Counted from the stretch's first letter, positions 12,562 to 15,036 are shown. The stretch is 64,000 nt of DNA from Oikopleura dioica (GCA_907165135.1 OU015567.1:13392001-13456000); one strand, 5' to 3'. Made by a program: numbers and translations. The notes: generated by a model not told the origin, from the letters alone.

Positions 12562-13904
12562 ATGAAGCTTTCTATTGCTCTTGCAAGTGCTGTATTTGCG
12601 GATACGCAGTGTACCTCGAAAGGAGGAACTTGCACTGACTATCGATACACGACATGTTACGCTGGTTACGAGAGATATATTTGTAATGGTGACAGCAACC
12701 GTCAGTGCTGTCTTTACTGCTCGCCAACTTGTGAAGCTAAAGAGGAACTTGACTCAGCCGGCGATTCGAGGTAAGACTAAAATTTTTGAGAACTGAAATC
12801 AACGAGGACTCACCCTTCTTCTTACAACCTTCAAAATTGAATAAGGTGCACAGCAGCTGGTGGCGAGTGTAAGCACAATACGAACTACTGCAACGGAACC
12901 TACCAATCTGGTCTTTGCGGTGGCGGTGCTTCTAGACAGTGCTGCACCGGAAAGGTAAGAGAAGATCTCATTTTGCAGTTGTTACTCTTCCAGGAGGATC
13001 CAGATCCACCAGTTGACGTTGGAGGTGATTATTTCAATCGTTACTACGGTTACAAGCTGGGTGGAAAAATCAGTGGTGAAGATTTTTCGTCATTGAGCTC
13101 AGCGAAGAATAGATGCTCGACCCTTGGCTCCAGCTGTTCTGGAGTTGTGAATGACTACGCAGGACACTATTATTTGTCAACGAGCTATACATTCAGTTCG
13201 GCAAGTGGACAGACCACTTACGAAAAAGGCGAGAAGGAACGCGTCATTACTGTTTTGAAATTGCTCTAAAATAGATTCAAAGCAGCGTTCATCTCATAAA
13301 AGTGGTCGGCAAGATTCGTCCCTCGAGTAGAATGGGAAGCCAGAAGCCCAACTGGTGTAACTAACTTCCAACTTCCAGCACGGCATGGACTGATTGGTCA
13401 TCACACTGCTGGTTCTCACTGTAGCGACAAGGCTTCCTGTATCAGCAATATGAAGGGCACTCAAAACTATCACATGGACTCTTTAGGATGGTCCGATATT
13501 GGATACCAGTTCCTCATTGGAGAAGACGGTCGCATCTATGAGGTAAATTTTCTATCATTTTCGATCATTCTATGAGACAGGGGCGAGGTCAATGGCGACA
13601 AGGAGCTCACTGTAGCAACTGGAACTCGAACACAATTGGCTTCTCGGTCATGGGCAACTTCAGCAACCGTCTTCCGAACCAAAACGCTCTTGATGCTGTG
13701 GATGAGCTCATTGCCTGGCTAGAGCGAAAGAATTATGTGAACAAGAACTGCTACGAGTTCGCCGGTCACCGAGACAAGAATGCAACTGTGTGTCCAGGAG
13801 ATCCTCTCTATGGTAATTTTTAATGCTGATATAGAAGTAATATTCGAACCGTTTTAGCTCACTGGGGATCTGGAAAATATCCATTTTGGCATAGAAAGTG
13901 CTAA
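12562..13904 (+). CDS. PGRP: Secreted peptidoglycan recognition protein (predicted Zn-amidase) with two N-terminal six-Cys defensin-like repeats and a small Cys module
   Basis: Signal peptide MKLSIALASAVFA. Amidase_2 motifs FVPRVEWEAR, HHTAG, WSDIGYQFLIGEDGRIYE/GRG, GAHC, IGFSVMGNF, GHRD, TVCPG with Zn ligands H/H/C and the catalytic Tyr present. Last exon AHWGSGKYPFWHRKC* ends at 13904. Confidence 0.9.
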
Positions 13905-14035
13905 ATCGAATGAAATTAAGAATAAAATATTTTGTCTTTGGAACGAGTAAGGATTTATTCTTTCATGTACGGACAAAACATTTGAAACAAAATATAAAAA
14001 TGGTGAAGTACAGGTAAAGAGGGATGGGTCGATTT

Positions 14036-15036
14036 CTAATGCTGCTTGACTTTGTTCTTCTGTTCTAAAAATTGCTCCAATGAGCGAATTATGCTCTTGT
14101 TCATTCTGCCGTCGAGGTGTTTGACGCGGTAGCCGTTGTCGATTAAAAGTTGTTGCAGAACGATTGTGGTCTTGTATCCCCATCGACCTTGATTGAAGTT
14201 TAGAGACACGAAATGCATTGGATAGCTACCTGGCTTGGAGTTATATTTGTCGTTGAAGTCACGAGTGAACGCAACCCGCGCGTCTTGGTCGTGGAGGAAC
14301 TGTCGGAAAGCTAAAGATACAATGTCAAATTGAATAATTAACAAGGCCGTCTAGGTAGACATTAATTTGATGTAAGAAAAGCTTTGATGTACTTTCTCAC
14401 CTTTGATGACGGCTGAGGACCATCCGCCTGAAACTGAACTTGGTGATAGATAACCTTCGTCCTTCAAGAAGTCTTGCAAGAGTCCTATCGAATTGTAGCC
14501 GAATCTAAAGCAAATTGACGATTTAAAACTTTGCTTTATTTTACCTCGAGCCTGGCGTAACGCGGTGCTTAGATTTCCTCGCGGAATCTTGCATCATCAA
14601 GAACCTTTGTAGCGACTCCCTTGTGTTGGTGCCAAAGATACCGCATGGCTTCGCGTCGGGGTAGATTCTGAGGTCGTACATGAAGTTTTGAAGAGTTCCA
14701 ATCATCAGCGAGTTGAAAAGATCGTTGACTGGAAGTCGTCCCTTCTCAGAAAGAAATTCTTTCAACGAGTTGATAGAGCGCCAGTCGAATTCATCTGATG
14801 ATGGTTTCGTTTTAATTGTTCTTATGGTAGAATAATATTTTGATAAAATTGTTCATCGCTTACCCTAATTCATATTCTCTGTCGAGGAAAATTGTCAAAC
14901 TGTTCTTCAATTCTCTACTGAGCTGCAGCTCTGGATCGAAACTCGTACTTCGGATTCTTCTGGAGCTTCTTCGTTTGCTTCTGCTTCTGCTCGCCTCAAC
15001 AGAAAACAGCAAAACGCAAAGTTTATAAAAAATCAT
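14036..15036 (-). CDS. Secreted 275 aa protein built from about 7 peptidoglycan-binding-domain-like (PGBD) repeats
   Basis: Four exons (15036-14864, 14820-14545, 14504-14401, 14310-14036) joined by GT-AG introns, 828 nt in frame. Signal peptide MIFYKLCVLLFSVEA. Repeats include FGTNTRESLQRFL, FGYNSIGLLQDFL, WSSAVIKAFRQFL, WGYKTTIVLQQLL and MNKSIIRSLEQFL. The PGBD assignment is by motif resemblance only. Confidence 0.75.

Follow-up and report, generated by a model that had tools for sequence, protein, structure and literature searches.

An Oikopleura dioica gene for a secreted-type protein of eight tandem PG_binding_1-like helix-loop units

Results

A five-exon gene lies tail to tail with a PGRP gene

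The locus lies in a stretch of 64,000 nucleotides from the genome of the planktonic tunicate Oikopleura dioica (G000:C5:13392001-13456000, hereafter the window; coordinates without a prefix are window positions), and the own genome searched throughout this study comprises 64.28 Mb in 19 contigs. Sequence reading and translation placed a gene of five exons, hereafter the repeat gene, on the minus strand at 15036-14036, with its start codon (ATG) at 15036-15034 and its stop codon (TAG) at 14038-14036; both codons were confirmed in the sequence, and the extent of 14036-15036 given in the preliminary description of this DNA was therefore exact. In a script check, the five-exon splice translated exactly to P0004, a protein of 261 aa deposited as GenBank CAG5113669.1 (Oikopleura dioica OKI2018_I69, unnamed protein), for which the database record holds no functional name and no precomputed Pfam domain. 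Analyses at full length were based on P0004, those at exon level on the window sequence. The features of the locus are as follows.

12562..13904, plus strand: PGRP gene, with a signal peptide, a Cys-rich N-terminal part and an Amidase_2 domain
13905..14035, unstranded: spacer of 131 bp between the convergent stop codons, the PGRP stop codon TAA being at 13902-13904
13954..13959, minus strand: AATAAA, candidate polyadenylation signal of the repeat gene (sequence reading)
14036..14187, minus strand: exon 5, units 7 and 8 and the stop codon TAG (splice equals P0004)
14188..14229, minus strand: intron 4, 42 nt, in frame, GT..AG (P0004 and its orthologue P0089 both read KPG joined directly to RWGYK)
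14230..14310, minus strand: exon 4, remainder of unit 6 and a linker (splice equals P0004)
14311..14400, minus strand: intron 3, 90 nt, GT..AG (an RNA contig of run X1 joins 14310 to 14401; ends CT..AC on the plus strand)
14401..14504, minus strand: exon 3, unit 5 and the beginning of unit 6 (metatranscriptome; splice equals P0004)
14505..14544, minus strand: intron 2, 40 nt, GT..AG (sequence reading; splice equals P0004)
14545..14820, minus strand: exon 2, units 2-4 (part of the P0004 splice)
14821..14863, minus strand: intron 1, 43 nt, GT..AG (required to reproduce P0004; consistent with the transcript-derived orthologue P0089)
14864..15036, minus strand: exon 1, start codon, hydrophobic signal-peptide-like N-terminus, Arg/Ser-rich stretch and degenerate unit 1 (sequence reading, translation)

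Expression was seen in run X1, a marine plankton metatranscriptome whose contigs were 95-99% identical to the window. Besides the contig that joins the two sides of intron 3, contig 5 of this run spans 14545-14757 and stops exactly at the exon-2 boundary at 14545; the repeat gene is therefore real, and it is transcribed and spliced in a natural plankton sample. Intron 4, which a plain ORF reading and the preliminary description had both missed, is spliced out in the annotation, in the orthologous transcript and in one RNA contig, the last being an X1 loose end at 14228 that continues with sequence ending at about 14185. Read through, this intron adds 14 stop-free codons (SYPMHFVSLNFNQG), and its retention would give an isoform of 275 aa. 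Bulk RNA-seq runs X7-X9 are labelled with this species too, but none of their reads fell on the repeat gene, and those on parts of the PGRP gene matched at only 90-95%; the runs are thus probably from another lineage, and they are uninformative on expression.

The neighbouring gene was identified by its Amidase_2 (PF01510) matches, at 40.8 bits (E 3.5e-10, cut-off 26) for the exon at 13581-13811 and 21.4 bits (E 3.3e-4) for the exon at 13303-13542, with 37.7 bits for the locus in a six-frame genome search. Two of its introns (12955-12993 and 13543-13580) were seen as RNA joints in X1. Its Cys-rich N-terminal part occupies two exons within 12562-13270, and the 83-residue exon at 12994-13242 had no Pfam match. 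The AATAAA of the PGRP gene (13921-13926, plus strand) lies inside the 131-bp spacer, about 30 bp from that of the repeat gene, and the 3' ends of the two genes probably abut or overlap by a few bases. Coordinates and Amidase_2 exon matches together confirm the tail-to-tail arrangement with a PGRP amidase gene that had been described.

The product is a basic protein of eight units with one invariant cysteine

P0004 begins with a hydrophobic, signal-peptide-like N-terminus, which points to secretion, and continues with an Arg/Ser-rich stretch (SRSRSKRRSSRRIRSTS) that, in a family comparison, is common only to P0004 and its 85% orthologue. We read the RSKR/RRIR motifs of this O. dioica-specific stretch as resembling convertase sites. 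Without the signal peptide the protein has ~245 aa and a pI of about 10, and without the Arg/Ser stretch as well it has ~227 aa and a pI of about 9.6; the pI ranged from 9.4 to 10.1 in 4/4 full-length family members, and in these same four the mature part contains exactly one cysteine, which is invariant. No catalytic domain was found in P0004, which ends after unit 8.

The mature part is built from eight helix-loop units, seven of them clear (an aromatic-Gly lead and an LQxFL-type helix) and the eighth, a degenerate one, at the N-terminal end. All seven repeats that the preliminary description had placed after a signal peptide and an Arg/Ser-rich stretch were thus recovered, and the degenerate N-terminal unit was added to them. 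A long repeat motif occurred 5 times against 0.011 expected, a count reached in 0/20,000 shuffles, and a loose helix motif 9 times against 0.99 expected, with a maximum of 6 in 20,000 shuffles, both patterns having been picked after the sequence had been seen. The units are kept in orthologues of 85% (P0089) and 44% (P0067) identity and in the paralogue type (P0068). Exon 2 contains the most conserved block (GRLP ... IGTLQ ... KPCG.FG..T...LQ.FL) and holds the only cysteine of the mature protein (P0004 residue 117, window about 14644-14646). All orthologues and paralogues share this residue within a K-P-C-G motif, at the position of the Asp in canonical DG.FG.

Sequence profiles relate the units to PG_binding_1

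Against Pfam PG_binding_1 (PF01471, gathering cut-off 23 bits), the whole of P0004 scored 24.2 bits (E 3.9e-5); the margin is thin, and the score adds up several weak stretches that each fail to pass as an individual domain. The paralogue exon 1 scored 22.8 bits, and two sister-lineage fragments matched at the same place with E 6e-4 and 0.018. The four exon translations of our first, four-exon model matched no Pfam family even at E 10; exon-by-exon scans were empty because exons split the units. A Ribosomal_S18 match (E 0.0065) was rejected as chance.

A family profile made from window exon 2 and paralogue exon 1 was searched against 1.84 billion proteins and returned 64 matches, with PG_binding_1 present in 53/64, PG_binding_3 in 34 and PG_binding_2 in 30. 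When four full-length family members were aligned by hhalign with ten canonical copies from the bacterial protein P0024, the match reached 95.4% (E 2e-8) and placed residues 98-155 on template positions 5-53 of 57 (49 columns), a match that falls in exon 2; against a single bacterial PG_binding_1 copy it reached 81%. An HMM of the canonical copies found three helix1-loop-helix2 pairs in P0004, at residues 98-131, 154-187 and 221-243, and a weak fourth pair in orthologues, aligning only positions about 3-42 of 57 in each P0004 pair. On this reading the array consists of four such pairs, repeating every 55 residues or so, and all of its helices are full length. The canonical third helix does not appear to be kept, and the canonical Asp of DG.FG is substituted in most units. 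Two further searches gave weaker results: a sequence-profile search of the PDB with the repeat protein returned nothing significant (best, the SleB PG-binding domain at E 0.67), and a language-model search for look-alikes returned PG_binding_1 clusters at 0.82-0.84, under the tool's level for more than a lead.

The family profile also matched the helicase proteins P0016 and P0052. Matches in P0016 (8 stretches, profile positions 40-76) fall in its tandem repeats of the HA type (helicase-associated, PF03457). The HA repeat is accordingly similar to the unit '...LQ.FL...GRLP(V/I)N', and it is possible that HA and PG_binding_1-type units are distantly linked.

A predicted compact helical body has PG_binding_1 domains as structural neighbours

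AlphaFold2, run on a family alignment of 11 rows, gave a model with pLDDT 81.2 and pTM 0.76. Its first 33 residues lack order, and the remainder has eight main helices, one for each unit, which are predicted to come together as a single compact, all-helical body; they may do so as overlapping three-helix bundles or in another packing. Foldseek returned no match to the whole model in the PDB at E <= 0.001. In a shape search of the ESM Atlas, 8/10 rows were PG_binding_1 clusters, the best match being a bacterial protein superposed on residues 101-196 with TM 0.80 over all 87 target residues (rmsd 2.1 A). The top nine chains of an exhaustive PDB comparison included SltB3 (Z 5.8; 5anz), the Burkholderia phage AP3 endolysin (5.3; 5nm7), an L,D-transpeptidase (5.0; 4lpq) and SleB (4.7; N-terminal domain 6tci), as well as a Zn amidase (4.6), CtpB (4.3) and SleC (4.2). 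Most of these matches fall on about 50 aa of P0004 (residues 206-258, exon 5), and in these 7/9 top chains, for which the tool shows entry titles only, the matched stretch presumably lies in or at a peptidoglycan-binding domain. According to the tool, Z values of 4-6 are common for helical proteins, and weight comes only from the enrichment for one family, which is the family expected from the sequence. Calponin-homology domains, which recurred in the same comparison at Z 3.4-4.8, were set aside as a common helical arrangement with no sequence support.

The whole-protein Pfam score, the annotation of the profile matches, the hhalign result and the structural neighbours together bear out the earlier view of the repeats as PG_binding_1-like, and we consider it highly probable that the repeat protein is homologous to this family. 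With the PG_binding_1 domains of bacterial and phage wall hydrolases it shares the loop-helix signature G-x-[FW]-G-x-x-T ... L-Q-x-x-L; unlike them, it has no attached enzyme domain and is encoded by an intron-bearing animal gene. The canonical domains form separate three-helix bundles of about 57 residues (helix 1, DG.FG loop, helix 2, DG..G loop and a short helix 3), whereas all eight helix-loop units of the repeat protein are full length and share a single predicted body. Most of its units have lost the Asp of DG.FG, which in one place is replaced by the invariant Cys.

The repeat protein is distinct from the MMP prodomain

In animals, PF01471 includes the prodomain of MMPs, a domain without peptidoglycan-binding activity, and we know of PG_binding_1 being described in animals essentially only in this form. 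A six-frame genome search gave an MMP-like ORF on C4 as the best PF01471 match, and this is the sole other PF01471 context in this genome. Aligned by hhalign with the prodomain of this ORF, the family scored 0.13%, with no detectable profile similarity. In both proteins a Cys is flanked as K-P-(R)-C-G, which gives the repeat protein a superficial likeness to the PRCG cysteine switch. The MMP cysteine, however, is placed after the third helix, where it caps the catalytic zinc, whereas that of the repeat protein belongs to the loop connecting unit 3 with unit 4, and the repeat protein has no protease domain. As judged from these sequence comparisons, the view that the repeat protein is not derived from an MMP and appears to be of a non-MMP (bacterial/protist) type is supported.

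Relatives occur in larvacean-like, dinoflagellate and bacterial sequences

The own-genome search found two family loci only, the repeat gene and one paralogue with an unlike intron pattern:

C1:6996406-6997039: paralogue of the repeat gene

Word searches were sparse, exon 2 retrieving only two near-identical fragments and P0004 retrieving only itself, one 85% orthologue and a fragment. This orthologue, P0089, is represented by contigs of about 1 kb in the JGI and Logan sets, which we read as transcripts. Marine data in ENA, JGI and Logan supplied the close members of the family, all as unnamed ORFs or transcripts. Beyond this genome, we saw the family only in marine meta-omic sequences that are unnamed and larvacean in appearance. 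Among the 64 profile matches, for 30 of which names were looked up, we saw no animal-named source other than Oikopleura.

Next in line, with alignments across several units, come dinoflagellate proteins (Polykrikos kofoidii, Biecheleria cincta, Gymnodinium smaydae, a Cladocopium cluster and Dinoflagellata sp.), and after them bacterial and phage hydrolases with NlpC/P60, CHAP or Amidase_3 domains. In the dinoflagellate proteins, long tandem arrays of units are fused to PARP, EF-hand or HEAT modules, and unnamed RING-finger proteins bear tandem arrays of PG_binding_1-like units too. The uncharacterised proteins of Polykrikos kofoidii (EP00927_P085934) and Biecheleria cincta (EP00930_P002445) repeat the single-helix unit DG-x-[WF]-G-x-x-T-x-x-A-L-Q-x-[FWY]-L head to tail, as the repeat protein does, and BLASTP alignments between the repeat protein and the dinoflagellate arrays extend over 140-240 residues with E down to 2e-11. 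The dinoflagellate array proteins are long and multidomain and most have no signal peptide, whereas the larvacean proteins are short, secreted-type and stand-alone.

JGI transcripts of about 1 kb (P0029, P0105, P0064 and P0060) encode stand-alone proteins of 200-280 aa made of the same units; their alignments to the HMM of the larvacean family extend across 110-170 residues, and the start of at least P0029 is signal-peptide-like. Secreted stand-alone arrays may therefore exist outside larvaceans. Literature searches for Oikopleura with peptidoglycan or PGRP, and for dinoflagellates with PG_binding_1, returned nothing on the repeat protein; rusticalin belongs to a different tunicate protein family (PMC6339383).

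Such a distribution raises the question of origin, and one answer would be a horizontal transfer into larvaceans, from a bacterium or phage or from dinoflagellate-like protist prey, with introns gained later. The nearest outside relatives being dinoflagellate and bacterial or phage, the lack of other animal-named sources among the looked-up matches, the absence of similarity to the animal's own MMP prodomain and the different intron positions of the two paralogues all speak for this. Against it, the similarity rests on short, repeated, low-information units, so that E-values add up over copies, no sound tree results and no donor clade can be named. Most matches, moreover, have no taxon label, base composition is ordinary (GC 0.45 for the repeat gene, 0.42 for the window and 0.48 for the neighbouring gene), and fast larvacean evolution may mask a vertical ancestry. 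The pattern of relatives is compatible with horizontal acquisition, to which we assign a rather low probability.

Linkage to the PGRP gene is not conserved

The preliminary description proposed that the two convergent genes form a module for the binding and cleavage of peptidoglycan. In such a module the repeat protein would bind the wall, the adjoining PGRP amidase would cut it, and the pair would be co-regulated by way of its convergent arrangement. Several observations would suit such a module: the genes end only 131 bp apart, both are transcribed at similar low depth in the X1 metatranscriptome, and bacterial and phage PG_binding_1 domains are commonly fused to amidases or peptidases (Amidase_3, NLPC_P60 and CHAP partners). 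The amidase also appears to keep the His...Cys spacing expected of an active enzyme, as compared with T7 lysozyme. If the ligand suggested below is right, both secreted-type proteins would act on peptidoglycan, though they belong to unrelated folds and families.

The linkage itself, however, did not hold up outside this locus. On the sister-lineage contig L006 (91% protein identity), blastn similarity runs from the upstream region to 13953, at the AATAAA of the repeat gene, and then diverges; the downstream gene there (L006:2126-3058) encodes an RNA polymerase Rpb1 domain. In the present genome its best counterparts are found at C5:8.12 Mb, on the chromosome of the repeat gene but 5.3 Mb from it. 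These counterparts are near-identical tandem copies (C5:8116736-8118169 and 8122992-8124424, about 6 kb apart), and a 72% paralogue lies at C5:6276342. On contig L005, which carries the 44% orthologue P0067, no PGRP was found within 7 kb downstream, where Kelch, trypsin and SNF genes occur instead.

Within the genome, the three Amidase_2 loci are all on C5, whereas the paralogue of the repeat gene is on C1. The two further Amidase_2 (PGRP) loci are at C5:13640184-13640635, 235 kb from the PGRP of the window, and at C5:5576629-5577192; four stop codons interrupt the match at 5.58 Mb, a sign either of introns or of a broken gene. Since the own-genome search finds two family loci only, the other PGRP loci have no family neighbour.

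In Oikopleura, neighbouring genes are commonly separated by only about 100 bp, and lineages differ greatly in gene order. With the adjacency absent from both contigs and for the C1 paralogue, the proposal of a conserved two-gene module was not upheld, and a functional module of co-regulated convergent genes appears very improbable. In a genome as compact and scrambled as this one, the adjacency of the repeat gene and the PGRP gene is most plausibly incidental.

Candidate ligand and function

Taken as a whole, the evidence is best explained by a secreted, basic PG_binding_1-type repeat protein acting as a wall-binding factor, to which we assign a rough probability of 0.42. Such a protein would be secreted and have no enzyme activity of its own; outside the cell it would bind an anionic cell-wall polymer, by homology peptidoglycan. 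Its targets may be bacteria that are filtered or eaten, or that are kept off epithelia (filter, gut or body surface), and its role would be that of a binding or opsonising factor rather than an enzyme. Through the cysteine of the KPCG motif it may be linked covalently to itself, as a dimer, or to a partner, as an adduct. Peptidoglycan binding as such we put forward tentatively, at somewhat less than even odds.

A different ligand has to be weighed against this, because among multi-unit relatives the closest are dinoflagellate proteins in which PARP, EF-hand, RING or HEAT domains accompany the array, and these cannot all bind peptidoglycan. Such intracellular-type contexts make peptidoglycan an unlikely ligand there, and the unit may therefore serve for binding in a more general way. 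With its fold unchanged, the repeat protein could then act as a protein- or glycan-binding scaffold. It might, for instance, be built into the extracellular house or the gut mucus or assist their assembly, or it might regulate another secreted protein, its unpaired invariant cysteine being used for covalent cross-linking. The apparent loss of the canonical third helix and the loss of the Asp of DG.FG would fit such a role, as would the presence of one invariant cysteine in a secreted protein, and the MMP precedent together with the dinoflagellate contexts indicates that in eukaryotes the fold is not tied to peptidoglycan. Among animals, moreover, the family was seen in larvacean-like sequences only, a restriction that many house proteins share. 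Yet nothing connects the repeat protein to the house (a full-text literature search for Oikopleura and peptidoglycan returned no such report), and a small, basic protein with a single Cys is unlike the known house proteins. Profile and fold similarity, furthermore, point to the true wall-binding domains of lysins. A ligand other than peptidoglycan is accordingly a serious alternative, which we nonetheless place short of an even chance.

A more far-reaching version of the wall-binding proposal would hold that the eight units form a new compact fold, restricted to larvaceans and horizontally acquired from a bacterium or a protist of dinoflagellate type, and that the protein is a cationic bacteria-binding factor of the filter apparatus or gut. 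We consider this combination quite improbable. If it were true, such a bacteria binder would be an animal peptidoglycan sensor or binder unrelated to the PGRP, LysM and lectin families.

Discussion

The locus provides a chordate example of a stand-alone, secreted-type, non-MMP version of PG_binding_1, kept across divergent larvacean-like sequences and with its nearest relatives among protists and bacteria. The unnamed GenBank protein CAG5113669.1 could now be annotated, and the negative linkage result cautions against inferring function from adjacency in this compact genome.

What the protein would mean for the animal depends on its ligand. Oikopleura has a reduced immune repertoire, and if bacterial walls are bound, the family would represent a new class of pattern-binding protein in an animal that filters bacteria-sized particles. 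If walls are not bound, the helix-loop unit would, together with the dinoflagellate arrays, represent a general eukaryotic binding module mislabelled by its bacterial name.
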